Shown here piece after piece: positions 7,801 through 64,000 of a stretch of 64,000 nucleotides of DNA. The translations under genes and the position numbers were made by a program. The stretch comes from Basidiobolus meristosporus CBS 931.73 (lineage: Eukaryota; Fungi; Basidiobolomycota). The first letter of the stretch is position 1, and each line of letters starts with the position of its first letter. The notes beneath the pieces are model-generated. The model saw only the letters and a program-made list of their open reading frames with translations. It did not search any database and was not told the origin of the DNA. Where the stretch lies: positions 1-64,000 of the forward strand of contig MCFE01000377.1 in NCBI GenBank assembly GCA_002104905.1, read 5' to 3'.

Positions 7801-8770
7801 GTTGTACTAAAGATCAGTGGAGACTTGTTATAGGGACCATACTGGTGAATTTCAATATAAAGCAGTGGTATGTTGGCTTCACCTGATCTTAAAAGAGATA
7901 TAAATCTATGAAAACCAGTGTGATTGTTGTGATTTCTATATTCTATACATTTCTAATCAATGGGGAGAAATACGTGGCAAACCTAGTTTATAGAGCAGTG
8001 GACCATTAGAGATTAGGATGTATTACAGCTTATAGGAAGCCAAGGAGTGGTGTGCTTAGTAGGAAGCAATTGCTATACAATACAATATCAAAGCATTGTA
8101 GAGTGAGATTATAGCATACATTTATATATCCAATGTTAATCAGAATATGGGAAGATAAATTTGGAGGAAAGTCAATTACAGGTGAAAGCAGCAGAACAGC
8201 CAAATATTTGCAATACTGATCAATACCCAGTTTCTCATACAAGAAGACATCCACTGCTATCAATGGATCAGCAACATTGCAAAGAGTAAATAATCCACAA
8301 AAAGCACTATTCTTGGCAATATAAGCAAGATTGTGCAGATCACCGGCAATAATATCCTACCACTGGCAGCATGGTGGAAATAATGGTGGCAGACAGTGGC
8401 ATAGAGTGCAAGTTCAATCTGGATCTCTGTAGCACTATGTAATAGAGCAAGTCTGATGGGCAAAATAATCAAGATATCAATTGATACACAGTTAATTCAT
8501 ACAAGACAACATCCACAAAGAGAAATTTGTCTGGAGCTTTATGCAGAGTCAGCATTATAGGAAGCAACTATCAAAAGTAAATAAGGCAAAATAAGCACTA
8601 TTCAGAGCAATATATGAAAAATTGAAGAAAATCACCAGTGACTGTATCCTAGCACTGGCATCATGGAAGAAATTATAATGGCAGATGGTGCTGCAGAGTG
8701 CTAGCCTGACATGGCACTATAACCTAGCTGGTACTTTTTGGTACTGCTCAATGGAACAAGTCTATTATCT
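7800..8770 (+). mobile_element. Decayed IS5/ISL2EU-like DDE_Tnp_4 transposase copy with duplicated 3' modules
   Basis: gattaggatgtattacagcttataggaagccaagg near 8010-8045 matches 39877-39910; 8280-8440 and 8580-8765 both resemble 40140-40340. Confidence 0.75.
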
Positions 8771-8779
8771 TGAATGCAG

Positions 8780-9300
8780 GTAAGCAAACAAACTTTGAGC
8801 CATCATTAGTGTACTAAGACAGTATTTTGAGAATAGTAGAAATTGCAAAAGGCAGAAGAATAAAGCTGCCTTCACTAAAAAGTAGCATCTTCTGTATATG
8901 CTTGTCACAGGCAAGGCTGAAAGCTCTGAGCAAGTAGTAAGGAGACGTTAGATAGCCAGCGGAGTACCAGTAAGCAACAAGCAGGTAGAAACAGATGCAA
9001 CAGTGCACTATTCAGCATGGAGAAACACAGCCTAGTACAATAAGTGCTTAGCTGAAGTAGCAGTGAAAAACCTGCTTATGATAAGGCCCCACAGCTTTCT
9101 CTGCAGCTCATCACGTATAGGTCTGGAAGCTCAGATAAGCAACAAAGAGACATTAGGTAGCCAGCAGAGAGCCAGTAATGGACAAGCCAAAAAAAGCAGA
9201 CGCACCAGTTCAGCTTTTAACCAGGAGAAAACACAATGCAATAGAAGAAGCACCCAGTCCAAGTAGCAGTGAAAGACCTGAAAGTGCTAAAGGTAATGGT
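8780..9300 (+). pseudogene. Fragment of the unknown ORF2 carried by the CACTA-like family
   Basis: ADAPVQLLTRRKHNAIEEAPS (9190-9270) aligns with DMDAPVQHLSRKKHSTTEEALS of the minus ORF 42204-42689. Confidence 0.65.
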
Positions 9301-9851: not shown

Positions 9852-12493
9852 TGTTACAAGTCTTGGTATAAGAGTTGTAGAAGAATAGGGAGTTCAGCTA
9901 GTATTGTTTTCACTGAAACTTGACCTGATTTTTATTGAGGTTCCAGCAGCTTGTTATATACATTTTGCCAGATCAATTGCTGACTAATTGTATTTCCTAA
10001 TGTAGGTTGTGGCTGATGACGCATTTGATTGCATCATCATCACCCAATAAGATCCTACTTAATATATCTATTTCTGTCTGATAAGGATCTGCTGATTCAT
10101 TTGCTGACTAGTGCTACTGATTTGATAGACAATACTGATATACTGATAACCTAAACATATACTAATTGATTTGACTAAAAACTGATCTAACTTAAACACT
10201 CAAGCGGCAGATCATAACATTCTCCCCTACTACAGTTGAGAGGGTTCTCCTGAATCTCTTTTCTTGTGATACCAATATCTTGATGGTTCAGTATTATCAG
10301 CAAGTCTCGCAAGCTTGAGTCTGTCCCTATGCACTAAGTCTTCCCGGATGTTGCCTTGTTTGTCCACCAGTTGGTAAGTTGCAAATGGACATTCTCTGAT
10401 GATCTTGAATGGTACTGTCCATTGTGGCTCAGACTTCTTCCAAGTGTTGTTTCTTAGCAATACAAAGTTCCCAACTGTCAATGCTTCTGGTGCTATAGTC
10501 TTATCAAATCTCTGCTTCATCTTTTCTGCACTTTGAGATACTTTGGTCTGTGCCTCTTAACGTCTTTGTTCCAGTTGCTGGTGTCTTCTTGGCTGACTAA
10601 GTTCATCTTCTAAGGCATCTGTAAGCTTGGGTTGTGTGAGATCTCCTGGAATCCTTGGTTCACATCCATACACTGAGTAAAATGGTGATTGCTGGGTGGT
10701 GTTGTGTACTCTGACTCTGCACGCAAATAGTGCTTGGTCTATATACTCATCCCATCTACTGACAACTCCATTTGCATACTTGGTCAGCATTTGTCCAAAT
10801 AATCCATTAAACCGCTCAGTGACTCCATTAGTTCTGGGGTGATATGCCAAGGTTTTCAAGTGTCTGATCTGCTGCATTTCCAGGTAAGCCTCTAATGTCT
10901 TTGCCATAAAGTTTGCTCCTCTATCAGATAAGATCTCCACAGGGCATCCAAACTTCATCAGGATCTCATGGTACATGAAACTTGCAACTTCTTGTTAACT
11001 GGCTATTGGTACAGCTTTAGCAACTGGCCATTTAGTGGCATGGTAAATTGCTACTAGGATCCAACGGTTGCATTTCCTGGTAGTTGGCAGTCTTCTAATA
11101 AAGTCAATTCCCCATCTCTCAAATGGTCTTACAGGCTCCAAAGGGTAGAGTTCGGCAATTCTTTGTGGCTGGCCTTGATTGATTTGGCAGTTTAGGCATG
11201 TTTTTACTAGCTTCTCAATGTCTTGTTTCATTCTGGGCCACCATGCTCTGGCCTTCACAAGGCTATAGGTTCCTTCAATCCCAAGATGTCCATATCCATT
11301 GTGTAGCTTATGTATTAAATCCAGGCAAGCAACATAAGGACAATAGGCAATAGGGCTTCTATCAACAATTTGGTAGAGTGTTTCATCCTGTACAACAAAT
11401 TTGCTGGCTTCATCACGGATTATCTTCTTGATATCTTCATCCACCTCATTAGGAATTGCTTGGTCCTCTAAGTACTTTGATAATAGCCTAGACCAATCTG
11501 ATTCATGCACCAAGTTGAGTTTTGCAACTTGATCTAATCTTGATAAGGCATCAGCAACTGTGTTGGTTTTTCCAGGGCAGTAGACAATCTCCAGGTCAAA
11601 TTGCTGAATGTATTCACTCCATCTTGTCATTCTTCTAGAGAGTACCTTCTGAGTAAATATATACTTGAGGGAGGCATGATCAGTCTTCACAGTGCATTTG
11701 ACTCCTTCAATATAGCATCTCCATGTCTTCAAACAGTGAATTATAGCAAGCATCTCCTTCTCATGGACTGGATAGTTTTGTTCTGCTGAGTTCAGTTTCT
11801 TGGATTCAAAGCCAACAGGGTAGTCCTTTCCCTTGTGTTCTTGGCTTAGCACTCCACCAATTGCATAATCTGAAGCATCTGTGCACAGAGTGAACTCTTT
11901 TCTGAAGTCTGGTATTCTTAAGCTTGGCAGCTTAGCAAGTTCATTCTTGAGCATCTGGAAGGCAGTCTCACAAGCTATGTCCCACTTGTAGGTATTGTCT
12001 TTCTTGAGGATATCAGTTAAAGGGGCTGCAATACTTGCAAACAACTTGACAAATCTCCAATAATAGGAAACCATTCCAAAGAATGATCTGAGCTCTGATA
12101 TGCTATGGGGGTATTTCAGATTCTTGATTACTTCCACCTTCTTTGGGTCTAAGGTTACTCCTGTGCTAGTCACTATGTGTCCCAGGTATTCAATGTGCTC
12201 CTTGAAGAATTCACACTTGGCTAGCTTGCCATATAGCTTGTTCTCTCTTAGTTTCTTCAAGACCTTTTCAATGTGCACTACGCAATCCTCTTCTGTCTTG
12301 CTGTATATCAATATGTCATCCAGGTAGATTATCACAAACTTGTCTAAGTGCTCCTGAAAGACAGTCTGCATCAGCGTCATGAATGTTGCAGGGGCATTAG
12401 TGAGGCCAAAACTCATGACCAGGTACTTGTAATGTCCATATCTGGTCCTAAATGCTGTCTTAGGAATATCTTCTGGTTTCACCCTAATTTGGT
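9852..12493 (-). mobile_element. 5'-truncated Ty3/Gypsy copy E (RT-RNaseH-integrase plus 3' LTR 9852-10219)
   Basis: 368-bp LTR with TG...CA termini; PPT abuts at 10220-10232; YLDD RT, TDAS RNaseH and integrase in ORFs 10995-12626, 10557-10976, 10230-10520; homology ends at 12493. Confidence 0.95.
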
Positions 12494-13758
12494 AAGCACA
12501 ATCAGTATAGCTGCAGCACCACATGTAAACATACATGTAGCACATCTTCCCTTTGATTTGATCAACTCTGAGTTGTTTGTCTCCATTATATAAGGCAAGG
12601 CTGTTTGGTTCCAATCCAAGCCCCATTGCAAAGTAAAGTACAAAAACAGTATGACTACTGTGTACTTTAATATTCAGTACAGCAAGGCCAAGTTACAATG
12701 TGCCCACTGGAGGTAAGGATACAGATTACTAAGGCTCTCAGACAAGTATGCTATTAAGAGTCTCAGTAGTGTCTTAGCAAGCATGTTGTCAGGTCATACC
12801 AAAGCATTAACAAGACAACCAGGTGCAGTGGCTAATAGGATAGATGCAGTGGTCCACAGAAATCAGGAAATAGGCCGGAGAAATACCAAGTAGACACTAT
12901 GTTAAGTACAATCAAAAGGCCAGGCAGAGATTTCAGTATCTAAGCTGTATGAAGAAACCCAGTAACTCCATGTTGCAGACCAGTACTGAGTCAACTTGCA
13001 ACTTCATAGCAGAAAAACACTGCATAGTCATTAGAGTACATCAAAAGTTCCATAAGATAAGCCCACAGTAAAGAATATCATTCAAGTAAGAGAAAGATAG
13101 TGATGTTAATACTAAAGCCTAAAACTCAAAAGTCACCAAAGATATATGAAGCCATTGCATGCAATGATCAAGAGTAAGCTAATACTTAAGAGGCTCCACA
13201 ATATCTAGTGTGCCATCACCTTAAGGCTGGTATATCATAGGACTATGAGGAACTTGAGGTCAACCCTAATATACTTCATGTGCTTTATGAGCATTACTGT
13301 AGATTTAATCCTTGGGACAGCATTGTTATCCTACAAAAGTACCGCAAGGATAGCAGAGACTATCAATAACAGCAGAACAAAGGTGCTAATGTTATGATCT
13401 GCCGCTTGAATGTTTAAGTTAGATCAGTTTTTAGCCAAATCAGTTAGTATATGTTTAGGTTATCAGTACATCAGTATTATCTATGAAATCAGTAGCATTA
13501 GTCAGCAAATGAATCAGCAGATCCTTATCAGACAGAAATAGATATATTAAGTAGGATCTTATTGGGTGATGATGATGCAATCAAATGAGTCATCAGCCAC
13601 AACCTACATTAGGAAATACAATTAGTCAGCAATTGATCTGGCAAAATGTATATAAGGAGCTGCTGGAACCTCAATAAAAATCAGTTCAAGTTTTAGTGAA
13701 TACAATACTAGCTAAACTCCCTATTCCTCTACAACTCTTATACCAAGACTTGTAACAT

Positions 13759-13815: not shown

Positions 13816-16800
13816 ATGTCGGACAATCAAGAATGGAAGAATGCCATGCAGCAAATCCTGACCCAACAGCAACAGCTACTCCAGATCCTCAGCCAACAGC
13901 AACAAGGAATGACTACCATGGCTCAGAGCCAGCAAAGCCCTGTCAAGAGCAACTTTAGTGTGAAGGTCAACCGGTACCATGGCAGAGTCAATGAAAACCT
14001 GGGAACTTGGCTCTTTCAGATTGAAGAAGCTTTTAAAGCTAAAGGAATTGCTCCAGAGAGCAAGTTGCATTATGCAGCTTCTTACCTGGCAGATGCAGCT
14101 TTACAGTGGTACCACAACAAGATCAGGTCAGCTACTATGATGGGATGCTCTACAATCTCTACCTGGGATGAGTTTGTGACAGAAATTCAGGATGCTTTTG
14201 AACCTCCACACCAGCAGACACTACTAAGAAGGAAGTTAAAGACACTCAGACAGAAAGGAATGGTGCAAGAATACATCTATGAGTACAGATGTCTACTTGG
14301 ACAAATTGAAAGAATGGACCCCTTGGATCAAGTTGAATACTTTATTGATGGGTTGAAAGAAAGAACTCGCAAGGAAGTCAATTACCGAAGACCTCAGACT
14401 ATTGAAGAAGCCATCAAGATTGCCATTGACTATGACTCAGCTATGTTTGGAGTTGGGAAGCCTACAGTGACTAGTCAGAAAGGCTATAATCATTATGAAA
14501 GAAGACAATCAGAAGCAGTACCAATGGAAATAGACGCTATGCAGAAGAATCCCTCCTCAGAAGAATGCAAGAAGAGAGGACTTTGCTTCAATTGCCACCA
14601 GCAGGGACATATTGCAAAGTACTGCCCTCAGAGAAGAAATGGACACCAGCCAACAAGAACCTTCAACCATATTGAGTCCCATGAACACAGTAATGTGGAA
14701 GATGAGCTTGAAGAAGACTCGGAACTCACCTTCCATATGACAGAAGAGTACTTGTCCCAAATGACTTCAAACTCAGGGAAGTTATTGTACCTGAATGGAG
14801 CAATCAATGGAGTACCTGCCAAGATCATGATTGACTCAGGAGCATCGCATGAGTACATGTCAGAGCAATTTGCTTTGAAAGCTGGAATCAACTCGGAACC
14901 TACCAAATCAACTTCAGTCTCCACAGCTGATGGGAACTCCCACATAATCAACCGTATTACCCAGCCAGTAAGAATGAAGATCAATGACTATGAAGAAGAC
15001 CTACAGGCTTATATATTTGGGAACTGCAAGTTTGACCTTGTACTTGGGAAAACCTGGCTATTTTGTCGTAATCCATCAATCAACTGGAGAACCCATGCTA
15101 CTCAGATCCAAAAAGACAACAAGACCTATGAGCTATTACCTGCCAGGCTGGATTTCAACTTGGTCAATTCCAGTGTGTGTGAGACAATTGAACTTAGCAA
15201 GACCCAGTTCTGTAGAGCACTTAGAAAAGGTACCCAGATGTTCCTCATGGCGGTATTACAGGAGGATTCCTCTATCCCAGCACCCCAGCAGGTCCAGACT
15301 CTCTTGAAGAAATATTCAGACGTGTTTCCAGATGAGCTTGTAAGCCTACCACCAGTCAGAGACGTGGATCATGCCATTGACACAGGAGATAGCCCTCCAG
15401 TGAGCAAGACACCTTACAGAATGAGTCCATTGGAATTGGAGGAAATGAAGAAACAAATTGATCAGCTATTGGAGCAAGGATACATCAGGCCCAGCAAGTC
15501 ACCTTGGGGAGCACCAGTGCTTTTTGTGAAAAAGAAGGATGGAACACTTAGGATGTGCATTGACTACAGAGCCCTGAACTCAGTTACCGTCAAGAATAAG
15601 TACCCCATACCTCGGATTGATGAGCTTTTGGACCAACTTAATGGAGCCACTATTTTCAGCAAGATCGACCTCATGTCAGGATACAACCAGATTAGGGTGA
15701 AACCAGAAGATATCCCTAAGACAGCATTCAGGACCAGATATGGACATTACAAGTACTTAGTCATGAGTTTTGGCCTCACTAATGCCCCTGCAACATTCAT
15801 GACGCTGATGCAGACTGTCTTTCAGGAGTACTTAGACAAGTTTGTGATAATCTACCTGGATGACATATTGATATACAGCAAGACAGAAAAGGATCACATG
15901 GTGCACATTGAAAAGGTCTTGAAGAAACTAAGAGAGAACAAGCTATACGGCAAGCTAGCCAAGTGTGAATTCTTCAAGGAACACGTAGAATATCTGGGAC
16001 ACATAGTGACTAGCACAGGAGTAACCTTAGACCCCAAGAAGGTGGAAGTAATCAAGAATTTGAAGCAGCCCCAGAGCATATCAGAACTCAGATCCTTCCT
16101 TGGAATGGTTTCCTATTATCGGAGATTTGTCAAGTCATTTGCAAGTATTGCAGCCCCTTTAACTGATATCCTCAAGAAAGACAATACCTACAAGTGGGAC
16201 ATAGCTTGTGAGACTGCCTTCCAGACACTAAAGAATGAACTTGCTAAGCTGCCAAGCTTAAGAATACCAGACTTCAGAAAAGAGTTCACTCTGTGCACAG
16301 ATGCTTCAGATTATGCAATTGGTGGAGTGCTGAGCCAAGAACACAAGGGAAAGGACTACCCTGTTGCCTTTGAATCCAAGAAACTGAACTCAGCAGAACA
16401 AAACTATCCAGTTCATGAGAAGGAGATGCTTGCTATAATACACTGTTTGAAGACATGGAGATGCTATATTGAAGGAGTCAAATGCACTGTGAAGACTGAT
16501 CATGCCTCCCTCAAGTATATATTTACTCAGAAGGTACTCTCTAGAAGAATGACAAGATGGAGTGAATACATTCAGCAATTTGACCTGGAGATTGTCTACT
16601 GCCCTGGAAAAAACAACACAGTTGCTGATGCCTTATCAAGATTAGATCAAGTTGCACAACTCAACTTGGTGCATGAATCAGATTGGCCTAGCCTATTACC
16701 AAAGTACTTGGAGGACCAAGCCATTCCTAATGAGGTGGATGAAGATATCAAGAAGATAATCCGTGATGAGGCCAGCAAATTTGTTGTACAGAATGAAACA

Positions 16801-17949
16801 CTCTACCGAATTGTTGATGGAAGCCCTATTGCCTATTGTCCTTATGTTGCTCGCCTGGATTTAATACATAAGCTACACAATGGATATGGACATCTTGGGA
16901 TTGAAGGAACCTATAGCCTTGTAAAAGCCAGAGCATGGTGGCCCAGAATGAAACAAGACATTGAGAAGCTAGTAAAAACATGCCCAAACTGCCAAATCAA
17001 TCAAGGCCAGCCACAAAGAATTGCCGAACTCTTCCCTTTGGAGCCTGTAAGACCATTTGAGAGATGGGGAATTGACTTTATTGGAAGACTGCCAACTACC
17101 AGGAAATGCAACCGTTGGATCCTAGTAGCAATTGACCATGCCACTAAATGGCCAGTTGCTAAAGCTGTACCAATAGCCAGTGAACAAGAAGTTGCAAGTT
17201 TCATTTACCATGAGATCCTGATGAAGTTTGGATGCCCTGTGGAGATCTTATCCGATAGAGGTGCAAACTTTATGGCAAAGACATTAGAGGCTTACCTGGA
17301 AATGCAGCAGATCAGACACTTGAAAACCTCGGCATATCACCCCAGAACTAATGGAGTCACTGAGCGGTTTAATGGATTATTTGGAAAAATGCTGACCAAG
17401 TATGCAAATGGAGTTGTCAGTAGATGGGATGAGTATATAGACCAAGCACTCTTTGCATGCAGAGTCAGAGTACACAACACCACCCAGCAATCACCATTTT
17501 ACTTAGTTTATGGATGTGAACCAAGGATTCCAGGAGATCTCACACAACCAAAGATTACAGACACCTTAGAAGATGAACTCAGTCAGCCAAGTAGACACCA
17601 GCAATTGGAACAAAGACGTCAAGAGGCACAGACCAAAGTATCTCAAAGTGCAGAAAAGATGAAGCAGAGATTTGATAAGACTATAGCACCAGAAGCATTG
17701 ACAGTTGGGAACTTTGTATTGCTAAGAAACAACACTCGGAAGAAGTTTGAGCCACAATGGACAGGACCATTCAAGATCATCAGAGAATGTCCATTTGCAA
17801 CTTACCAACTGGTGGACAAACAAGGCAATATCCGGGAAGACTTAGTGCATAGGGACAGACTCAAGCTTGCAAGACTTGCTGATAATACTGAACCATCAAG
17901 ATATTGGTATCACAAGAAAAGAGATTCAGGAGAACCCTCTCAACTTTAG
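13816..17949 (+). CDS. Gag-Pol polyprotein (1377 aa): capsid, CCHC knuckle, aspartic protease, RT, RNaseH, integrase; no chromodomain
   Basis: [14 protein letters not shown]; IMIDSGAS; YLDD; TDASDYAIG; HNGYGH...CPNC; GIDF/SDRG/VTERFN; GPFK C-terminal module. Confidence 0.97.
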
Positions 17950-48602: not shown

Positions 48603-49974
48603 ATGAACGCGCTGAGAACTTCTCAACTTCTGGCTTCCAAGTCGATGGCTGGTGTTTCAACCTCCTTACTGGCCTCCACCCAGCTACGCTGCTCGATGGC
48701 CCGTGCAACACCAGTGTTGGCACGCCAACTACATCTCCAGCCTTACAAGGATGAGAAGAAATCCGTCGTGAATCCTGAACTCTACAAAATCCCCGAGGAG
48801 CTTCTAAACGATGTCCACCCCAAGGCCATTCGCAACGCCTTTATTTCCCGGCAACTTTCCTCGGAGGAACTCGAGAAGTGGGACATTGGGTTGACCAAGC
48901 ATCGCGAGCCCATCACATTTGGCGACAAGGTGGCCCTGACCGTGGTCAAGTCCTTGCGTATTCCCGCCGATCTCTTCTTCCGAAAGAAGTACATGCATCG
49001 CGCAGTGGTACGTATCCAGATCGTCGAGCCCCGAGGTAATCTCGTGTACTAATCCCAAATCCCCCTTTGGGCAGGCCCTCGAAACGGTTGCTGCAGTGCC
49101 TGGAATGGTTGGAGGTAAGGAAACTCACCAGATTGGATATGTGGATTGAGTATTGATGCGATTTCCACCAGCGGTCATTCGCCACCTCAGAAGTCTCCGC
49201 AAGATGAAGCATGATGGAGGTAACTATATGCGCAAACGGATTCATCTGGAACCCACCGATACTAATTCGTCCCTTCCAGGCTGGATCACCCATCTTTTAC
49301 ACGAGGCAGAGAACGAAAGGTAAATCCCGAGCAGTATGGACTGATTGGTTCTACAGTGTCTCACCCGTCTTGCTCCACAGAATGCATCTGCTTACTTGGA
49401 TGAAGGTCTGCCAACCCACGCTTCTTGAGAGAATGCTTGTAACAGCGGTCCAGGTAATATTGACTACGGCAAATGGCAGCGCGGGCGATCATTGACTAAC
49501 CCAACGCGTAGGGTGTATTCTTCAACTGTTTCTTCCTGTTCTATCTGTGCACACCCAAGACCGCCCATAGGTAAGTGGCTTATCAGGATGTGGCTGGCGC
49601 ATCCGGATTGCTCATGGCATTTGCTGTTACGTAGGATCGTTGGCTATCTCGAAGAAGAGGCCGTCATCTCGTACACGGGCTTCTTGAAGGAGATTGACGA
49701 GGGACGAATCGAGAACAAGCCAGCGCCCCAGATCGCCATCGACTACTGGAACCTACAAAAATCCGCCACTATCAGGGATGTCGTACTCGCCGTTCGTGCT
49801 GACGAGGCTCTTCACCGCGACACTAACCATCATTTCTCCGACCGAATCTCCCTACGACAGGAGGATCTCCGCACCGAGATCAGTCGCACCAAGCTGCTTC
49901 ATGCTCAGCAGGCTGCTGAGAAGAGCAAGCCGGAGGAAGTCCACGACAACGAGCATGCTGGCAAATGGGCCTAA
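48603..49974 (+). CDS. AOX: Alternative oxidase, 7 exons (48603-49007, 49075-49114, 49172-49219, 49280-49319, 49381-49453, 49512-49570, 49635-49974), 334 aa
   Basis: Spliced exons total 1005 nt in frame with GT-AG introns; [26 protein letters not shown] and RADEALH di-iron motifs; R/S-rich presequence. Confidence 0.97.
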
Positions 49975-50528: not shown

Positions 50529-51806
50529 ATGGATTTTGGCACCTCTAATCCTTGTACCCCTAGTTCTTGCGAGCCAGGTAACTCTAACAACAGTCCTAGT
50601 ATCACCTCACGTTCACAGCCTTCCTACAACAATCTCCAATGCGAACGCAACCAGCAGCACTGCCAACGGCTCAAGTTCACGCAGCAACCTGTTCGCCAAC
50701 CACATGTTTCGCCTTGAAGCCGAATTCCTCCACCGCTGCTCCACCCAAACCAAAACCGTCTATCCCAGTCAGCAATTCCTATCTAATCGAGTTCACGAAA
50801 CGAAAGAACTGGTCACATCGCATCATCGACCAGCTACCGGACTTCTATTATGTTATCAACCCGGCCGGGTGTTTTATGTACTGCTCACCCTCCTCGATGG
50901 CGCTGGTAGGGTACTCCCCCACCGAGCTGATAGGGAGGAATATCGTGGACTTCATCCATGTGGATGACGTGGATATCTTCATACGGGATATCAAACAGTC
51001 GTTGGAGGAGCACCAGTTCAAACTCTTCTACCGTTTCCGAAAGAAGGATGATAGGTTCGTAATGTTAGAAGCCCAAGGGCACGCGTATAGAAAAGGGAAT
51101 CCCGAGGCGAAGTGTTTCTTCAGCATCGCCCGACCTTACCCGTTGAAAGCCACCTCGAACATGGACAAACTGCTCGAGCTGAAGCTGGAGAACGAGATCC
51201 TACGACAAAGACTGGCCCGCCTGCGCGGCGGGTACTACGACGACTCGGCTAGCCCCCAGTCTAGTGTGAATCAAGACCTCGACGAAACCCTTCTGGAGGA
51301 GAGCACGTACAACGATGAGGACTTGCGTAATTCATTAGACCTTCGAGGCGGACGGGTGGACCGTGGGGCCTCTAGCTCCACTTCCACGTCGAACTCGAAC
51401 TCAACCTCATGCATTTACCCAATACCCAACAAGGAGGAGACCCCAACCCAGTCGCAAACACAATCGAATAGTGCGCTTGGGGCGAACAAAAAAAAGGTAG
51501 CACGCTTTTTAGACAGTAGGAAGAGGTGTGACTCGCTGGAAACTAAACATCTGTTCTCTTCATTCAAGCGAAAGCACAAGATCGAGGACGACGTGGATCG
51601 CGTCTGTACAGAATGTGGGAAAACCGACTCTCCCTGAATGGCGTAAGGGTCCGCACGGGCCCAAGACGTAAGTGCATCTGTTGATGAGCCGTTGGTTTGA
51701 TTCCAGAGAACTGACCGAATCTAGTCTGTGTAATGCCTGCGGGTTGAGATGGGCCAAAAAATCCCGGCGAGAATCCAAAACGGAAGGGGCCGCCAGCGAA
51801 TCATAG
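50529..51806 (+). CDS. wc-2: White collar-2-like PAS + GATA zinc-finger factor; 5' exon structure uncertain; +1 frameshift at 51632-51634
   Basis: EFTKRKNWS..IIDQLPDF hallmark, PAS domain, coiled coil [33 protein letters not shown]-intron(51668-51724)[12 protein letters not shown]; intron 51497-51568. Confidence 0.88.
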
Positions 51807-52326: not shown

Positions 52327-55300
52327 CTATCTTGACTGCTGAGAGGAGCCACTACTGGAAGTCTCATCATTTCCCGACCTTGGATTCGTCCCTAGGTTTA
52401 CCGAGGAGAGCCTGGCAAGCTGGCTTGGGGTGTGATAGCCTAGTTTATCTATGGATGTACCAGAGACGTTGATCCCTTGCACCTGGTTGATGGCCAGATT
52501 GGTCTTCCGGCGCTTGTTACGTTCGAATTCGGACCATTTCTTCATGGTGATCTGGGTCGAGTCGAATTCCCCTTCCTTCTCGCCATGGCCTCCGGCCCCT
52601 TGCTTCTCCCCCTCGACCTGCCTTGTCTGACCCCAGCTGAAGTCGTCGAAATGCCAGAACGCGTACACCGGGAGGATGAAGTTCCAAACGAGCAATGAGA
52701 GCAAGTAGATCAGCATCCAGCCAACATAGATCACCTTCCGCGTGGTCATCAGGATCAGTATGGCCGGTAAGCCCAAAATCACGGCCAGGAGGATCAGAGG
52801 GATAATCGGTGCGGGGGTCATGAGGAATGAGGCAATGACCAGATAAAGGGTAAAGCAGATGGCAGCCGGGAGAACCACCGTTCCCAAAAGCTCTAGGAAG
52901 ACCACGAATTGCATCGAGAAGCAAAAGGTCCCACACAGGTCTCGGATCAGGACCAGCTCCAGAAGGTTGTGTACAGTTGAGTTGATCCAGCGTCGCCGTT
53001 GAGACAACAAGATGCCGAAGGTGTCGGGCACCACCGTCTTGCACACCGCTTGAGGCACGAAGATCATCTTTCTTTTCGGGAAGGTCCGGAGCATCAGCGT
53101 GGTGAGGAACCGATCTTCTCCCAGCAGCAGGAGGTTTTTCTTGTGCAGAGTGTCGACCACATTCTCCGAGTAATGCTCCACGATATCCGGGCTGGCCAGC
53201 ACAGGCACCCAGAGTCCGGTCGACCCCTTAGGCGCCTTGATCCTGTACATGCAGAAGCATCCGGGTAGACAGGTGACGCCACCGAATACAGACTCGAACG
53301 CTTTGCTCAGATGGTGGGAGATGTAGTATTCAAACACCTGGATCATAGTCACCCAGGAATCGCGTTTGTTGGCAATCTTGGTCTCCCCACACAAGCCCAT
53401 GATTTGCGGATCTCGAACCATGCAGGACACCATTCGAGTGACCGAGTCTGGATATACCTTGGTATCAGCATCCACCATCAGTACGATCTCAAAGTTGTCA
53501 GGACTCACTCCGGTCACGCCCCAGATCGCGTTGAACAGCTCGTACTCCATCTCGGTCATCCGCTCATCGAACATAACGTGCTGTAGGAAGGACATCAAAA
53601 TGATCTGACTGTCGCGCTTTCCACGGTTCCCAGGCTTGGGGAGATTCGCCTCTTCCGGGGTGCCGCACTTCGAGATGAGGATCATCGGAACCCTGGGCTG
53701 CCTCTCGGTAGGCACGGTACTGTCGTCGAACTTGTAATACCCTGCGTAGATCTTGGACATATTGTGACGCTTAGTGCCGTCAGCGATAGCAATGTATGAC
53801 ATCGGCTGAACCAGTTCCGGGGCAATGACGAAGTCCTTCATCATGGAGAGGCAGATATCCGGGGTGGATAGGTCATTTCCAAAGCCAGTGATGACTCCAT
53901 CAGCGATGACCAGAATCAGTTTGTGCGAAGATGGATAATCAGTCAGGGTGAGTGAGTCGAGGGTGGTGCGTAGCCCTTGCTCCCCTTCGGAATAGCAAGT
54001 GACCAGCATGATCGTGTGGGCCAAGGGGAAATTGAATGGCTGGAACGTAACTGGTGGTGGGGTTGGAGGGACATGTACCGGGGAGGTTGCAGCCAACGAA
54101 CTGTTGGACGTCCGACGTGAGAGAGTCAGGTTCAGCGGCTCTGGCGTGCCCGCTGCCCTTCGGGTTCCTGTTGTCGCCGGAGACGTTGGCTGACTGTCTG
54201 AACCAGGCCCGCAGAAAGGATCAAGGTGTTCCTCTTTGAGCTAGGCTCCTGGACAGGGACAGGAATGGGAATGGAGTATCTGCTTGTGTTGGGAAGGAAC
54301 GCCCCGCTGTTCCTTACAGATTGGGAATTCGATCGAACAGCGGAGAATGCAATGTGACTGGGATTATCACTCCACAATTCAATGGCCTCCAGTCTTTTCA
54401 TACGCTCTTCGTACGTTTCCTGCCGGAAGGTTCCTAACCGCCAGCTCAGCACCCACCCAAAGAAGACGGCAAGGAAAAACTTGGTGAGAACCACACCCAG
54501 GATGACGACGAGCGAAACGTAAAGGATGATGTTGGAGATGATGCACCCCATGGAGTTCGTGTCCAATGTCCCCACCTTGAGGATCTCCATTGCACACCTG
54601 GCTTCAGCCTTGTGATAGTTGTTGAAGAGGAATGTCACATCGGTGCCTCGGTGCGGGGAGTTTGCACTACGCAGTGTTTCGAATACCGGTGGGACCTCAA
54701 TGCCAGGAACTAGAGAATTCAAGATATCGAAATCAAGTATATTCCTAAACACACACGAAACTTGTGTCAATTCACACATTCAGGTAATGTCCAGAATACA
54801 TTTCGACTTACCCATTGTATACGGCCAGGTTGCGGTTCTTTCTCAGGACGTCATTCCAATTATAATAAACATCCCCCAGGACATTCAAGCGCACCAGGGC
54901 ATCCCTCGACACCTTAGAGACGTGGCAGCCAGTTTGATTGGTGTTGTCGTTGGTGTGTGGGTAATAGGTGGCGTTGCGAACGACGCAGGGGAAATAGTTG
55001 TACACGTTCCCAGCAGAATCCGCCCCATTAGTGACCCTTAAGACGTTTTTACAGTTCCCATTGATTTGCTGAAACAAGTAGGACATATCCATGGCTCCGG
55101 CTAGAGAAACAACACTCCCCCCTTGGGTCAGTATTGCATTAACGGTGGGGTGGTTGAACCCTGATATCTTATAAGCCCTTCCGTTGACGATAGAATAGTC
55201 TATACCGATGGTCCCCTGTTTGACACGCAGGGAAACGCCCCCTCCGCAGAGGACTTGCTGCAATCCAAATGTAAGAAAGCCCACAAACAGGCAGAGAAAT

Positions 55301-56352
55301 AGGATCAGAGTGCATAGCGCCATTTTCTCTCTCCAAGCCTGCCTCACTTCTGGCGTACGCATCCCTAAAGAGTACAGCAGATGAGAAAACGTCAGGTGGA
55401 TTTCCTAGTGAGCTACAAACCACAGCAAGAGAGTACGGGTCGAGGAGCATAGAACGTAACCACTCTGGAGAAAATCGCCCAGCAGCTTGGGCAGCTCCGT
55501 TTTTGCGAGGTCAATACCTGGACTGGTTTGGCACCAGTGTTCTTCAAGACTCTCAGGATACTGTCACTACGGCCAATGGGATCATGGCGATGGACGGAGT
55601 TTCCTTTTTGCAGCCCCTCTGCTTCGTCTTTGTGACGCGGATACCTTCGCTGAGTTGGGCGGCGCTCGGGTCTTATCAATGACTTCTGTCTCCTTGGGTG
55701 ATCAGAACCGTCCGCCCCTTGTGACGCTGCTCCTAGATGGGTATTTCTTCGTAACAGGTTCCGGGACCCAAGTGACTTGGTGGAAGACCTTGAGGGGATG
55801 TTATCCCTGGTAAAGGACTCCCGCAACGGAGATATATTTCCTACAAGAACCGATTAGCTGGATTGACTGATGGACCATCTGGATCACAAGCGAACCTGCT
55901 GAAGAACGACTACGGGAAGGCCGATTGTCTAGCCCATCATTGGTTTGTCGGAGGGCCAGAGGCTTGTATGAGGATCTTGGTGAAGCGATTTGCACGGTTT
56001 GTCGGCGTTCAAGACTGGTGATCGGTCGATCATTTCTGGATATGCTTGGCTCAGGGGAGACTGGTCTTTTTAAGACCTTAAGAGATTTGCGGGCTAAGGG
56101 AAAGCATACTTAGTACATGGTTAAGGTATTCGCTGGCACTAAGCGCCTACCCTCAACATTGGCCAAATCCCGCTTGTAGGTGGATGGATTTCTGGACAGG
56201 GGTCTAGATTCTGCCGGGCTTCTTCCGACGATGGTCACTGAGCGCCGTGGTTGCGCAGAGGAGGGGCTCCGACTGAGTGAAGGGCTAGGGGGATTCTCCT
56301 TTGATGTTGAACTATCGCTTGATTTAGAGAGATTTTCGTTCATTGTTCCCAC
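52327..56352 (-). CDS. CHS3: Class IV chitin synthase (ScChs3-like), at least 4 introns, one unexplained frame break at 54132-54243
   Basis: [72 protein letters not shown]; introns 56150-56094, 55895-55841, and near 55420-55366 and 54810-54745. Confidence 0.95.
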
Positions 56353-57282
56353 ACTTCAATCTAAAGCAGTAATGGAGTAAAGCGAAAGTTGGCAAAGAAG
56401 TCTATGCAAAAACAAGCATCACAGGGCAAAGCGACAATAGCCAGTATTAGGAGATGTTCGAGAGAGAAAAGACCGGTAGAGACCGGTAGATCAACGCCTG
56501 CGTGGTTAATATATTTTTTGAGAAACGTTTTTAATCTACTGTTCATGTGCATCAAATGTAGGATTGATGTCCACAACGACTATAGACTATACGCTCATCC
56601 ATTCTTACTGCACCTCTCCCGTTATTGGAAATGAAGCGATCCCGATTTTTCGAGAAAGCGAAGCTACCCCTTAATTGACTGGCGGTGGTTTCTACGAACA
56701 ATCTCTCCTTGGTTATGTAACTCCTGTATTGGACTCAGCTCTATGTTTCGAGTCCAACTTGAGCGAATGAAGATGACCCGTCATACACATATGATATCAT
56801 CCGCCTGAAATCTACGGATTGTTCTAAGCAACAAATCATGCGGCGTTTTTGATAACGCACCATGCAGATCAACTTTCGTGCAGACGTAGAAGGCCCAGTT
56901 CTGCGGATACCCCAGAACCTCCACCATTTACGAGAAGGGAGAGTTTGGCCACCGTTTTCCAGCAAACGTATTTGAAGATTTGCGATAAGGGTTAACTGAC
57001 ACATGGCTTTGTTCCTACCTTTTCTCCTTTATCGTAAACTCCAGGAGTCAAATCGATCGGAACGACCTGATCCCATCAGAAATGCCGACAAGGCCGTTGG
57101 CTAAAATACCAACACATGTATGTGGCACTCCTTGGCTGGAGCTAGGGAGTAGCGCTGCTTCTATCCCGTCGGGCCTATGCCAAATATATGCTTGACAGCG
57201 TTTGCCTCTTTTTTCAATCGAAATTTATTCTTTTCCACAAGCGCAGGGTTTCTATGGAGTGTGGTACCTGAGTGGATCTACC

Positions 57283-60200
57283 TTAGTGGTGTAAATGTGG
57301 AGTGTTGACGAGGGATATCGAAGAAGGCACCGTAGCACGGACCGACACGCTTCGCAGCAGATTCTTGATGTCTGCTTTGGATCTATCGGATCGGATCGTT
57401 CTCGAGGTTAGCGACATCTCTCTTGGGACGTCCGACGAATCACTATCCATAAAATCACTAGAATCGTTGCCATTCTTCAGGGCCTCAAGCAGGTTTTCTA
57501 CCTTGGGGGATACGGGTGGTTCGGAATCCTCGTGTCGAACGATCAATGGAGCAGAAAGCTTAAGGTGGTGTACGTGTGCGCCACTCGCGCATTGCTGCGA
57601 ACATATAGACGACCGTAGAGAATCATAGCTGCTCCCTTTTGGATCGTACTCCAAATCTAGCCGTTTCTCAAGGTCGGAAAACTGCCGCTGCGAATGCTCA
57701 TCGTGGAGGAGGATCTCCTTGATGGTGTCTGGGTCAATGTTCACCCTTCTCGCCTGGTACGAGAGGTTATTGTTTTCTTTTAGCATGGCAAATGTTTTCC
57801 CCTCCATGCACTTTAGATCATTGAGGTTGCAATCTCGTGGATCAAACCAGCAGTTGGACTGTTTCCGGGTCTTGATCACTTCCTTCATGTACGTCCGGAG
57901 CTGCTCGATCTCAAGAAACTCGCCTGCATACTCAAAATAAGAAGCTACGAATTGATCCAGCGCGTGAGGCTGCTCTATAGAATTGGCTGTCCCTTGTAGT
58001 TTGAACATCAGTGGAGTCACTCGAATCAATTCGTCATGCTGGTAACGCTGGAGAAGTTTTTTGAAAATCGAAAGAATGATCGAGTAATCGAGTGGGAAAA
58101 GTGACTCCTGCAAAGTACAATCGAACAATGCTTGATGAAGCGCATGTCTGAACTCAAGAGCAGTGTCTACTGAGCGATGTACATGCTGTGATGAAAATAT
58201 TAGGTGAAGCCGCTCCATGCAAACCAAACGGGAATACACTGTGCAATACCTTGGCCGAGTTTATGGTTGATGACTTCGGTGTTGCTGTGTTTTTGCTACA
58301 ATAGATCAGTCACGAATTGAGAAAAAGTGGGTCCTGCATACAAAATACCTCTCATGGATACTCCAGTTATCCAGATAACTCAGAAAGAAAAACCCGTATT
58401 CCTTTCGTACAGCTAGATGGAGATTAGCAGAAGCCTCACAAGGTGATCTCCGTCAAACTTACATGGATGTTCATTCGTAAACAAGCAGAATGTGGGCGAG
58501 ATAATAGAGTAGGGAACCTCACTGTTTCCGTAATGGGAATCCTCCACTGCCTTACTGTTCGTGTCTACCAGGATCTTCATACACTTGAGCACGGCCCTGC
58601 GAATAGAGGAAACAGGAACTTCATCGACAACTTGCTCTTTACAATTGAGCGACAACTTTTTGATCAAAAAGTCCAGAATATCATTGATTTGTTCGGAGTA
58701 GTAGAGATGAGTGGCTAAACCGCCTGGATAGAACGTGGTCAGCTGTAGTATAGGCATACGCTTGATCGGCTCCTACCAATGCTTTCCACGATGCCTTTTC
58801 GAAACTCGGCCTCTAATGGAGTAAATTCGTGAGGATGTGTATTGTTTTTGTTGAGACTCTTATACTTCAACATAATGAACAAGTGGTCGATTAGAGCTTC
58901 AACAACCTCCAACACCGATAATCCCACAGCAACCATCCGATTAGCAAGGCAGAATGCTATCAAGTTTATCAGAGTAGCTTTCCTCTGGTCCACCTCCATT
59001 TCATTGCATAACTTCAGCATCTTTCGGATTTCGTTGACGATGATATGGCGATATGATGGCTATACATACACGATTAATGGCTGGATGAACCATACTGACG
59101 ATAGCCCAGACACTTACCGCGACGTTCAGCATAATGAAATGAACCAGGTCGATGCAGTAGTCTTGACACTGGTAGTGGTTGTGCTCTTCTATATAGCTGA
59201 ATTCCAAAGACACTAAGTTAATACCCATTGTGAATAGACGCGAGGAGGCATCTACCTAAAGAAAATCACGGTAATTTCTCGAAGATACAACGGAGGGCTG
59301 TTTTGAAGTAACTGCTTGCCACACTCCAATGAGCACACGTTTGTAGTGGCTTCGCTCATTTCAGTCGGACTCAAAGTGTAGTGCTCTTCTAGACACTCCG
59401 GTGTCTCAGGTAGGTCAGATTCACTAAAAGGACAGGAACTGTTAGCATCTTGTTGTTGCAACTCCAGAGCGGAAGTGAAAACCCCCACGTCAAATAGGCT
59501 TTGAACGAATCGATGTTCGACAATATCGAATAGATCAGCTCTTTCAAGTAGGCTTTCGGGCTTGAGGATTTGATGATAGTCGAGCTGACAAGTCCATGAA
59601 TTGCTCGCAAACCCAGCAACCTCCATCTGCGATTTTCCCAATATTTCGAGTAAGATATAGTGTACCAATAAAATCACCTTCCCTGCTTACTTTTTCTCTG
59701 ATTCTTTGCTTGTGTCCTTTGACGCTTCTTTAATGAAACTGCTCGTTAGGGAATCGAATTCCCTGGTTAAATTTTCATCCACGCCCAGGGTAGAGCCGTC
59801 ATGTAGCGTGCAAAATCTACGAAACTAAATTTCCTTGAGGTTAATAGCTCGAATTTTCAAGAAACCAGTTGAAGTAAACATTACTGTATTGGCCGCTGCC
59901 CAACTTAAATCAAAATCGCCCATCTCCAGTATCGTTGATAAAGAGTACAGCACACACTTGGCGAACAGGTTGAGGTCTTTGCTGCAACCAGCCATGAGTT
60001 CGTTAATGATCCCAATGGTTATCATTATATCGCTGTTGGATGGTGAGCAAGATATCAGTCTCAGGCAAACAAGGTAGAATCAAAGCGTTTCTCACAATTT
60101 CTTTTGCCTGTAAACATCCCTACTAATCCTTTTTTTGAGATACTGCGCTACTTTGGCAAGTTTGGCTGGTTTCGAGGCGGCATAGTACACCAAATAAGAG

Positions 60201-60298
60201 GTTTCACTGGGCTGTGGGGAGTTTTGCCCTGCTTGGGTGGGATAGCAATTCTCGATCAGACGGACATGATTCTTTCTGGGTAAACACGAACACGACAT
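57283..60298 (-). CDS. EFR3: EFR3 homolog (plasma-membrane scaffold of the PI4-kinase complex), multi-exon
   Basis: N-terminal MSCSC (palmitoylation-type Cys), HVRLIENCYP, SYLVYYAASKPAKLAKV..YL.KR, DLNLFA, YYPDQI-type motif (FYPGGL/YYSEQINDI); GT-AG introns join the exon ORFs. Confidence 0.9.
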
Positions 60299-60875
60299 TT
60301 TGATGGAATTTCAGGAAGAGACTCGAAGCTGTCAAGAGAGAGAAAGATATAAATGTATATATAAAACTTCGATGAAACTCCCAGATATCCATAGAGCGTT
60401 CTTGAGCCGGGAAAATGTCAGTGAGTCCCAAAATGTACATGTCAAATGAGTTTTTCCAGGATCCGAAACGATGAAGAGGGTATTGGCTGTCACGAATCTA
60501 GATGCGATGCCACAAATGGAGTTCGAAAAGTAGCAGCCACAAGGTCTATAGGTAGGCAATGGTGTCATGTGATTTTCACAAATCAATGGTATGATGTGCA
60601 GATCATGTGATACGCGGGGACCGTCCTATGACCTTCACTTCACTCACTACCTCACATCACATCGCAGCAAGGTGTGGTGATGGCATTGGTTAGTAAGCAT
60701 ACTCAATACAATGGTAGATGACGCATCATACTTTCACGGCCCATGACGTAGCTGATTGATTTAACTTTATCCAAGAAACTAATCCGATGTGAAAATTTGG
60801 TTGATATGCCTGTGCAGCGATTTGGCGGTGAGCGTTTATCTTGGCCGATAATCCAAAGCAGCACAACATTACAGA

Positions 60876-60880
60876 TATAA
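60876..60880 (+). promoter_or_regulatory. Candidate TATA box of small protein 1
   Basis: TATAA about 45 nt upstream of the ATG; paralog 2 has TATAA at a similar distance (62048-62052). Confidence 0.35.
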
Positions 60881-60922
60881 GAAAGTGGATCCTCTCTACA
60901 GCCATTATTACATTTCACAGCC

Positions 60923-61174
60923 ATGTTCTTCTCTACTCTTCTCCGCTCCTCCCGCCAAGTTGTAAACCAATCCAGTCGCATTGCTAGACAAGGCGAGCAT
61001 GTCGACCCTGCCCAAGCCGTTGCAGTCCACAAGAACACCCAAGCCAAAAGCAAAATAAACCGCACTGATGCTGAGGAGAAGCTCACCGGAAACATTAGCT
61101 CCAAGATTAAGGAAGGCACTACCGCCACAGGCTTGAAAGAGGAAAAATGGAGCCCACTGCGCTCCAACCATTAA
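60923..61174 (+). CDS. Small protein 1 (83 aa), unknown family, mitochondrial-presequence-like N-terminus
   Basis: Paralog of 62101-62370 with mostly synonymous differences in conserved blocks; the first 24 aa have 4 Arg, many Ser and no acidic residue; intronless. Confidence 0.82.
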   Translation: MFFSTLLRSSRQVVNQSSRIARQGEHVDPAQAVAVHKNTQAKSKINRTDAEEKLTGNISSKIKEGTTATGLKEEKWSPLRSNH

Positions 61175-62100
61175 CCAGCCATCCATGGTTGCCCTGATAT
61201 GGGATCGGAGGAATTATATTTTATGTCGGTTTCCAGCCGTACTTAGCTAACTAATAAACTCGTTCAGTTCTACCAATTGGGTTTGTGCTAGTGTGTGTAA
61301 CATACACAACGTGTACAACGCAAGAGTAAAACTTGCTGGTTTCTGTGATAGTGTGTCGCAGGATACTATTGGCGGTTGCTGAAGGGATCTACGTGTTTCC
61401 TAGGAAAGTCATAGATAAGCCATAACAGACCAGGTCTGTGTAATATATACGTGAAAGAATACTGTAAGTATACCAAATGAGTGACTGTATGCCGCACAAA
61501 ATCAGAAGTGAATATCAGTAACTTGTCGCTTGTGACCCTAGCCATATTAGTATGATGCAGGCGAGAGATGTCGAGCCCATTCCTGTTCCACGAAATGCAG
61601 CATCCCAATAAGAATGTGCCTCTATGACGCCCCTCGTTAGCCCTTCTGGTCATCACCAGCGTTAACGCAGCTGCTTGTTCCTGAATGCTGTTCAGTGGAG
61701 AATGGCTAGAATGCCAGCAGCATGAGACCGTTGTATAAGGTGAATACGTCACCAAGTATGAAATCAGTAATCAACGCCTAGTCACATGTGAGTGATTCAG
61801 CGATAAAGGTCACTTGAAAACCAAGCGTCCATGCCTGGATATTTGTAAGCTTAAATCGCACCACCACTCATCAGGAGGACAAACAAGAACCCAACACCTC
61901 GAGTGAGCAGTATTTCACATTCAACCGGACTAATTGGCCGCTGCGATCCTTACAGCTTCTTACTGGCGCTCCTTCCAGAACGAAGTCACATTGCCTTTTT
62001 CCTCTGTATCTCACCTGCCATTTGTCACTTGGCCGCTTCGAAAAAGGTATAAGTATAGCTCAACAAGTAGCCCCGATGATTGCCATTTCTCAACACAAAC

Positions 62101-62370
62101 ATGTTTCGTACATCTATCTTGAGATCGTCACGCCATGTAGTCAACCAGTCAAGTCGTCTCGCTAGACAAGGTGAATATGTAGATCCCAATGAGGCAATAG
62201 CTATCATGAAGAAAAATCAGCAGATCAAGGAATTCCTAAGATCTAGCGAAGCCGTCGAGGAAGAATTCAGTGGCAATGTCAGCGCCCAATTCAAGCATGG
62301 AACCCAGCCCGACACCTTCATTTACCTCAAGGAGGAAATGTGGAGTCCTTTACGTCCCAGTAAAGTTTGA
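62101..62370 (+). CDS. Small protein 2 (89 aa from the ATG at 62101), paralog of small protein 1
   Basis: LRSSRHVVNQSSRLARQGEYVDP...GNVS...LKEEMWSPLR; caaacATG start context; the ORF track start at 62080 is an upstream TTG. Confidence 0.82.
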   Translation: MFRTSILRSSRHVVNQSSRLARQGEYVDPNEAIAIMKKNQQIKEFLRSSEAVEEEFSGNVSAQFKHGTQPDTFIYLKEEMWSPLRPSKV

Positions 62371-62799
62371 TTGGCGTTTCCGTGCTGTATGTATACTTGT
62401 ACTATCCTGTATATCAACCTTGCTTTATTTACATACATCAACCCTCATTGCTGTATCGAATCCAGCTTTGTAGGTCAGATACATCCCTGCTCCCTTTAGT
62501 ATTTGGCCGGCTAGGTTTATACTTCAATTTTTATCGCAATTCTTGAGCCAAACTTGTCAACTCAATTCATTAAAATAGTCGAAATCATCAACCTCAATTC
62601 CATGTAGTTTATTGGCAAGCATCGAAATAGTAATCGGTCTTTACTCAAGTCGTGTCCTCTAAAAAGCCGAACATGTCATTTGAACCCATTTTAGAATTAG
62701 TGTCACATGTGGCGTGAACAAATCACTTGCAAGGCACGCAAGTGTAGATGGCTCACCGACTAGTGGGTGGGGCAAAGGTAGTCGGAACGTCACTACGAT

Positions 62800-64000
62800 C
62801 TATACTCTCAGCCTAAAGCCCATTGATTCGGTGCCTTGATAGTCGAGGATGGAGTTTAATATTCCTCGCTCTTCCTCGTCTAAATTCTCCATACCATGAG
62901 CGGCCTGAGGTGCAGACGGGCTGGCGCATGATCTACGTCTACATTGATACAGGCATGGATTAATGATATGCTGTTGGGTAAAGAGACGTTAGTACGTACC
63001 TTTCACCAGCGCCCTTAGAGGGCCAGGTAGGGAACATGGACGGATCCTTGGGCAACGGGCTCTCTCTAATAAAAGAGGTCACAATGATGTTAGAGTAAGT
63101 GGGTGGGAAATCGAGCTTACTTGAAATATGGGTGTTGCAGGGCTTCCTCTGCAGTAATACGCTTCTCGGGATCATAAGTTAGGAGTTTTGAGAGCAAGTC
63201 AAGCCCAGACTCCGTCACGTAAGGAAAACGGTTGCGCAAGTTGTTGTATCTAGAAGAAATGCACTGATAAGTACCACTAATCCATCGTGGCTAGTGTGGA
63301 GATGGCTTACGGTTGGTTGACAAATGTAATGTTCTGCGCATGAGGGAGGTTGGAAAACCCTGGCCATATTTTCTCATTCGGCATACCTAACAGACGGAAA
63401 ATCTAGAGCTACAGTTAGTAACGCCAACGAGTCTAACATTCATGCAACATCTAACTTTGTCCAACTGCTCGATTTCACCTCGTCCGGGAAACAATGGCTC
63501 GTTATTAATGAGCTCACCAAAAATACACCCAACAGACCAAATATCAATAGCAGTTGAATACTCTTTAGCTCCTAACAGAAGCTCAGGTGCTCTATATAAG
63601 AAAATTACAGCGTTGGTGTAACGACTACGCACGTGCAAAAGAAACTTTAACTAACCGATACCAAAGAGTTACCACTAGCTGGGTCATAGGGCCCAAAGGG
63701 CTTCCGTATTTACGAGCTAAACCGAAGTCCGCTACTTTGATTTCTCCTCGATTATTCAGTAGCAGATTGGAGGTCTTAAGATCTCTATGGATTATCCAGT
63801 TGTCGTGGAGCAGTGCAATGGCTGACAGTAGCTGGATCATTAGGGTTTTGATTTCTGACTGCAGAAATGGCGACTTCATGTCCTCCATTAATGCCTTGAG
63901 ATCGTGCTCGATGAAGTCCATCACTATGAATATACTATGAATTTGATTAATAGCGAAAAGGAATGGTGAAATCGATAGCAGTCCTTACCTATTTAAAGAA
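62800..64000 (-). CDS. CDK11: CDK11/PITSLRE-like cyclin-dependent kinase, 3' part (5' end outside the window)
   Basis: [59 protein letters not shown]; last exon ends GFRLRV-TAG at 62800-62802. Confidence 0.9.

Follow-up and report, generated by a model that had tools for sequence, protein, structure and literature searches.

Results

Two small genes and the selection acting on them

Two small intronless open reading frames (ORFs) lie on the forward strand of the window, the 64,000-nt stretch of DNA analyzed here. ORF A (60923-61174, +) encodes 83 aa followed by a stop codon, and ORF B (62101-62370, +) encodes 89 aa, counted from the first ATG, followed by a stop codon. Both are present as an earlier note on this DNA had described them, and the 22 identities among the first 29 residues (counted in the BLASTP alignment) as well as the codon pairs quoted there can be seen in the sequence. 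The two proteins align over their whole length with 47 identities in 85 positions (55%, E 2e-30, BLASTP). As DNA, the repeat is recognizable over 62 nt only, inside the N-terminal coding part and with 76% identity, and the DNA flanking A is unrelated to that flanking B; the duplication that produced the pair is therefore old. No further copy or remnant of the family was detected in 55000-64000 by a relaxed tblastn, and Rfam gave no match on 60000-63000. An AATAAA at 61253-61258 (+), 79 nt past the stop of A, is a possible polyadenylation signal judged by sequence inspection alone.

Between A and B, 51.2 of 53.0 synonymous sites differ (pS 0.97, i.e., saturated) against 57.8 of 196 non-synonymous sites (pN 0.30; Nei-Gojobori), with a Fisher p = 7e-20 for the contrast. 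Across all pairs among nine family genes, pS ranged from 0.65 to 0.97 and pN from 0.07 to 0.34, and the deficit of non-synonymous change gave Fisher p values from 5e-7 to 1e-35, comparisons with A included. Since pS is high and pN low in every pair, both ORFs are real coding genes. A and B are genuine, selectively maintained proteins, and the earlier claim of real proteins under purifying selection is borne out by these counts and Fisher tests.

That the ORFs arose by chance or are decaying pseudogenes is extremely improbable. A does evolve faster, with a pN/pS of about 0.4 in its type-2 slot compared to 0.08-0.19 for cross-species pairs of the same subtype, it carries two in-frame deletions, and the B. 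ranarum gene at the position of A has a one-base gap. Yet non-synonymous change is strongly deficient in all comparisons, those of A too, start and stop positions are conserved in the family, and A retains 33 of the 33 residues that are invariant in a six-sequence alignment.

Averaged over all pairs, pN was 0.22 in alignment columns 1-29, 0.28 in the middle and 0.17 in the last 16 columns. The N-terminus, previously described as the most conserved part, is constrained, but the C-terminal end is at least as constrained (0.17 vs 0.22), which weakens the hint of an unusually conserved presequence.

Relatives and range of the family

Word searches matched Basidiobolus proteins only, each labelled "hypothetical protein". 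The annotated relatives are K7432_014229/30/31 and K7432_015229/30 in B. ranarum and K493DRAFT_320032/33 in B. meristosporus. K7432_015229, K7432_014229/30/31, and K493DRAFT_320032/33 are true homologues, 46-73% identical at full length. These Basidiobolus proteins have in common with A and B the N-terminal segment, ARQGE, the helix, the WSPLR tail, and their occurrence in tandem arrays, while carrying neither name nor domain; no papers citing their locus tags were found. The best partner of B by position and tree is K7432_015229 (P0001), with 73% identity. The family is unnamed, comprises proteins of 83-96 residues and is represented by P0001-P0006 as reference relatives. A and B belong to it by full-length alignment and by the invariant R8, S10-R11, ARQGE, D-P, EE, G-T, and WSPLR. 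Family members scored profile E-values of 1e-30 to 1e-46.

A HMMER profile of eight members was run without length restriction against 1.84 billion representatives of clusters that together comprise about 15 billion proteins. It returned the family members and one repeat protein (P0008), and no relative outside Basidiobolus. P0008, the only non-Basidiobolus match, consists of reiterated ARQGELI units and was rejected as a low-complexity similarity. No longer proteins with the family N-terminus or tail were found at HMMER sensitivity. Pfam returned noise only for family members (DUF7120 with E 0.11, DUF7169 with E 0.031, and CSN5_C and MatB in single members), and a profile search of PDB sequences gave one chance match, to an actin-capping protein (E 1.2). 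The ESM Atlas was searched twice with best scores of 0.76-0.83, below the useful range, and its named-only search came back blank. JGI metagenome DNA and prokaryotic genome DNA yielded pattern matches, none of which was confirmed by tblastn.

Word search, full HMMER, Pfam, PDB profile and Atlas thus agree with the earlier statement that no known family can be recognized. Databases do contain relatives, however, which the annotations of two Basidiobolus genomes list as hypothetical proteins. The proteins of A and B are absent from the protein collection, as exact look-ups of seven window ORFs were all blank. As far as the searches of protein databases and of metagenome and prokaryote DNA reach, the family appears limited to Basidiobolus. 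Absence from the protein databases of other fungi is weaker evidence than it may seem, because small ORFs often lack annotation. A and B would accordingly be placed in a sequence orphan family whose members are already deposited as hypothetical proteins.

Genomic organization and subtypes

Five copies occur in B. ranarum at two loci (three and two copies), and three at locus L001 of B. meristosporus (MCFE01000599.1). B. ranarum locus L002 carries a type-3 gene on the minus strand followed by type 2 and type 1. At L003, a type-2 and a type-1 gene precede a protein-kinase gene in convergent orientation. Window positions 60950-63937 are collinear with L003 558-3276, and this conserved position supports the family membership of the two window genes. 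A occupies the type-2 position, syntenic with L003 531-817. B is a type-1 member, and its DNA similarity to P0001 covers 62085-62370, beginning 16 nt ahead of the ATG and ending at the stop codon. The gene downstream of B (62800-63937, convergent) encodes a protein kinase, in the same arrangement as in B. ranarum. At L001, a type-2 gene is flanked by two type-3 copies that are nearly identical and belong to an inverted repeat of roughly 1 kb. The arms of this repeat (8243-9224 and 11693-12671) are 96-99% identical, flank K493DRAFT_320033 and carry one type-3 gene each.

A gene of about 700 aa precedes the array both in the window (57283 to about 60300, minus strand) and at L001 (1979-4622, minus strand), with 66-72% DNA identity; no Pfam domain was found in it (696 aa at L001). 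A PAS-domain gene lies further upstream at both loci. Based on this shared upstream gene and the PAS-domain gene, the window locus and L001 are therefore products of a segmental duplication.

In the trees, the type-1 clade received 92-95% and the type-3 clade 98-99% support, and the type-2 clade was weaker. B groups with P0001, while A forms a long unplaced branch. The three subtypes are kept across species. Before B. ranarum and B. meristosporus split, the array would have comprised at least three subtypes; the family would now reside at two paralogous loci, the window representing the two-gene locus. B is a conserved type-1 copy. A is shorter and evolves faster, with all invariant residues retained.

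Promoters and candidate regulatory elements

A candidate TATA box, TATAAG, lies at 60876-60881 (+), 47 nt before the start codon of A, and type-2 relatives carry TATAAAA at -38 to -53. Upstream of B, TATAAGTA at 62048-62055 (+) is located 53 nt before the ATG and is invariant in all three type-1 promoters at -53 to -56. Further upstream, GTCACTTGG at 62024-62032 (+), 77 nt before the ATG, represents the motif GTCACTTGR found in three type-1 genes, occurring at -79 and -80 in the two of B. ranarum.

A 40-nt non-coding block at 61779-61818 (+) is identical in 39 of 40 positions to B. ranarum L002 4185-4224, upstream of P0002. The palindrome TCACATGTGA and a second copy of GTCACTTGA lie within this block, which occurs once in the window. 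The DNA neighboring the block does not align between the two genomes, and synonymous sites are saturated between them. The block is probably a cluster of transcription-factor sites and a candidate upstream regulatory element of B.

Two E-box-like sites, TCATGTGA, lie at 60565-60610 (+), 358 and 320 nt before the start codon of A, and type-2 relatives carry ATCATGTG at similar distances. Taken together, the (A)TCATGTG E-box-like sites of A and the type-2 genes fall at about -190 to -390. ATCATGTG occurred in four of nine family promoters vs none of 300 background chunks of 600 nt. TCATGTGA showed no enrichment over the whole window; its position and cross-species conservation alone are suggestive. 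Transcription would start from TATA promoters with conserved CATGTG and GTCACTTG elements. These conserved elements suggest regulated rather than housekeeping expression and support a view of A and B as independent, regulated transcription units with short leaders.

Protein anatomy

The first 23 codons of A (60923-60991, +) and of B (62101-62169, +) encode a cationic, amphipathic segment free of acidic residues, which ends in ARQ before an invariant GE and constitutes a putative matrix-targeting presequence. The assignment is based on simple physico-chemical measures. In each of the nine copies, four to five of the first 24 residues are basic and none is acidic. Hydrophobic moments over 18 residues range from 0.65 to 0.80, values that no more than 1% of shuffles preserving the composition of these 24 residues attain. 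A net positive, amphipathic N-terminus without acidic residues is hence found in 9 of 9 copies, and charge and hydrophobic moment uphold its earlier description as presequence-like. Inspection of the N-termini by eye revealed no strict hydrophobic-x-x-hydrophobic-hydrophobic Tom20 motif, a point against import.

The segment is followed by an invariant A-R-Q-G-E-x-x-D-P (A21 R22 Q23 G24 E25). If processing occurred after Q23, the R22-Q23/G24 context seen in the alignment would supply an arginine at -2. The middle region also holds invariant positions (EE, G, S, GT). At the C-terminus, the tail acidic-x-W-S-P-L-R is invariant in the family; it includes B codons 80-85 (M-W-S-P-L-R, 62338-62355, +), of which WSPLR is invariant in eight of eight aligned copies, and lies in the region of lowest pN. 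Judging from this pattern, the WSPLR tail may serve as a docking or modification motif.

Cys is absent from all nine copies, and Ser and Thr are abundant. Whole proteins have GRAVY values of -0.5 to -0.9 and the putative mature parts of -0.57 to -1.08. The maximum 19-residue mean Kyte-Doolittle hydropathy did not exceed 0.37 in the nine copies, so that no hydrophobic segment is present and the proteins are hydrophilic without a transmembrane segment, as had been proposed. AlphaFold2, given the family alignment, predicted a single helix at residues 29-53 and the rest with low confidence (mean pLDDT 60, pTM 0.27), a model too weak for fold comparison.

Discussion

Possible matrix import and its alternatives

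We infer that the N-terminus is best read as a mitochondrial matrix import signal. Approximately the first 23 residues would form a cationic amphipathic helix directing import, and the invariant ARQ/GE, with its arginine at -2, would mark the processing site at which cleavage may occur. The resulting mature peptide of 60-73 residues would comprise an amphipathic helix at about 29-53 and the invariant acidic-WSPLR tail, within proteins that are Cys-free, hydrophilic and presumably largely disordered. It might bind a conserved mitochondrial partner and act as a small regulator or protectant. For this reading as a whole, a matrix-imported small protein whose mature helix and WSPLR tail bind a conserved mitochondrial partner, we see the chances as evenly balanced. 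The constraint on the N-terminal 29 columns, equal to that on the rest, counts against import, because it is atypical for a merely cleaved segment. Five long-maintained paralogues, unusual for a structural subunit, would likewise count against it. A variant in which the amphipathic N-terminus is retained and acts together with the WSPLR tail is rather improbable; it would make the family a genus-specific mitochondrial microprotein that regulates a respiratory or ATP synthase complex, with the three subtypes as condition-specific isoforms under E-box control.

The N-terminus would not be an import signal at all if the proteins were disordered phospho-regulators of the cytosol or nucleus, i.e., small substrates or inhibitors of kinases or phosphatases acting in the manner of endosulfine or PKI. 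The invariant WSPLR and the conserved RSSR would fit such a role, as we take SPLR to match the minimal proline-directed kinase consensus S/T-P-x-K/R and RSSR/QSSR to match basophilic kinase sites. The mostly disordered AlphaFold2 model and the convergent protein-kinase gene immediately downstream, in the window and in B. ranarum, point the same way, although this neighbor may reflect plain synteny. We consider phospho-regulation unlikely, if still a serious candidate, as the first 24 residues of every one of the nine copies, entirely free of acidic side chains and with an extreme amphipathic moment, resemble a matrix presequence, and no known inhibitor family was matched in Pfam. A mitochondrial role would be kept if the family were a very divergent member of a known small mitochondrial family, such as IF1/Stf1, ATP synthase subunit h/F6, or a supernumerary respiratory-complex or mitoribosomal subunit, with similarity decayed beyond HMMER detection. 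Size, presequence, and single helix give the same general layout as IF1-type proteins, and the only named lead of the Atlas was a mitochondrial ATP synthase subunit with a weak score of 0.76. Such an origin is doubtful in view of the lack of Pfam matches to these families at E up to 10, the single chance match of the PDB family profile, and the HMMER search without outside relatives; many mitochondrial complexes have solved structures. Five paralogues in three subtypes would also not be expected of a stoichiometric subunit.

Conserved ends around a more variable middle and the tandem arrays could also be seen in ribosomally made peptide precursors, with residues 1-37 as leader and WSPLR as follower of a variable core. 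This is very unlikely for proteins that have neither signal peptide nor Cys. Their middle keeps the invariant EE, G, S, and GT, and its length of more than 40 residues exceeds that of known cores. None of the four loci has a conserved modifying-enzyme gene beside the array; the neighbors are a kinase, bVLRF1, RasGAP, and the 696-aa protein without Pfam domain, and they differ by locus. Matrix import remains the preferred reading of the N-terminus.

Comparison with IF1 and hydrophilins

The earlier note had drawn analogies to IF1/Stf and LEA-like proteins, which hold for layout but not for membership. IF1/Inh1/Stf1 proteins (Pfam IATP) are likewise small, hydrophilic, presequence-bearing and largely disordered, with one helix and with paralogues in fungi. 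In contrast, they show no sequence or profile similarity to the A/B family in Pfam, PDB profile or HMMER searches, and nothing known in IF1 corresponds to the invariant WSPLR tail. The A/B family presumably lacks the charged pattern that marks the inhibitory helix of IF1. Hydrophilins and LEA-like proteins share hydrophilicity, disorder, multiple copies, and TATA-type promoters with it. Hydrophilin criteria, reportedly set by Garay-Arroyo et al. in 2000, are Gly above 6% and mean hydropathy below -1. The putative mature parts contain 4-9% Gly, and two of nine (A and P0004) pass both thresholds, while the other seven miss one or both. As family members also carry no LEA domain in Pfam, assignment to the LEA proteins or hydrophilins was rejected.

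Significance and annotation

Basidiobolus is an early-diverging fungal genus that inhabits vertebrate guts and occasionally infects humans. The analysis defines a selectively maintained orphan family with ten copies in two named species and the window, three subtypes, and conserved promoters. If import is true, the family would add lineage-specific components to mitochondrial biology and offer an accessible example for studying the origin and diversification of new small proteins in organelles. Small hypothetical proteins confined to one lineage abound in genomes of this kind, and the analysis gives no indication of a specific function or unusual mechanism; for both reasons, a specialist would not be greatly surprised by the family.

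The annotation gains two window genes absent from the protein collection, one unannotated B. meristosporus copy, and the correction of one wrong B. ranarum model. The B. meristosporus copy is the type-3 gene at L001 8476-8748 (minus strand), which has no gene model and differs in one residue from K493DRAFT_320032. The 117-aa product annotated for K7432_015230 (L003 531-884) is a mis-model, as one base is missing near L003 707 compared to the paralogues. Its conserved C-terminal half is found in the next frame, at L003 710-817, where it includes WSPLR and ends with a stop codon in the position usual for the family. Either an error in the assembly or a frameshift of very recent date accounts for the missing base.

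Other genes were also recognized in the window. An alternative oxidase exon lies at 49492-49974 and the PAS-domain gene at 50639-51637; the minus strand encodes a chitin synthase with a CHS4-like domain at 52327-55362. An intact ORF of 1377 aa at 13816-17949 (+) encodes a Ty3/gypsy retrotransposon polyprotein, whose best relatives are 38-40% identical and carry Pfam sets of protease, RT, RNase H, integrase, and chromodomain.
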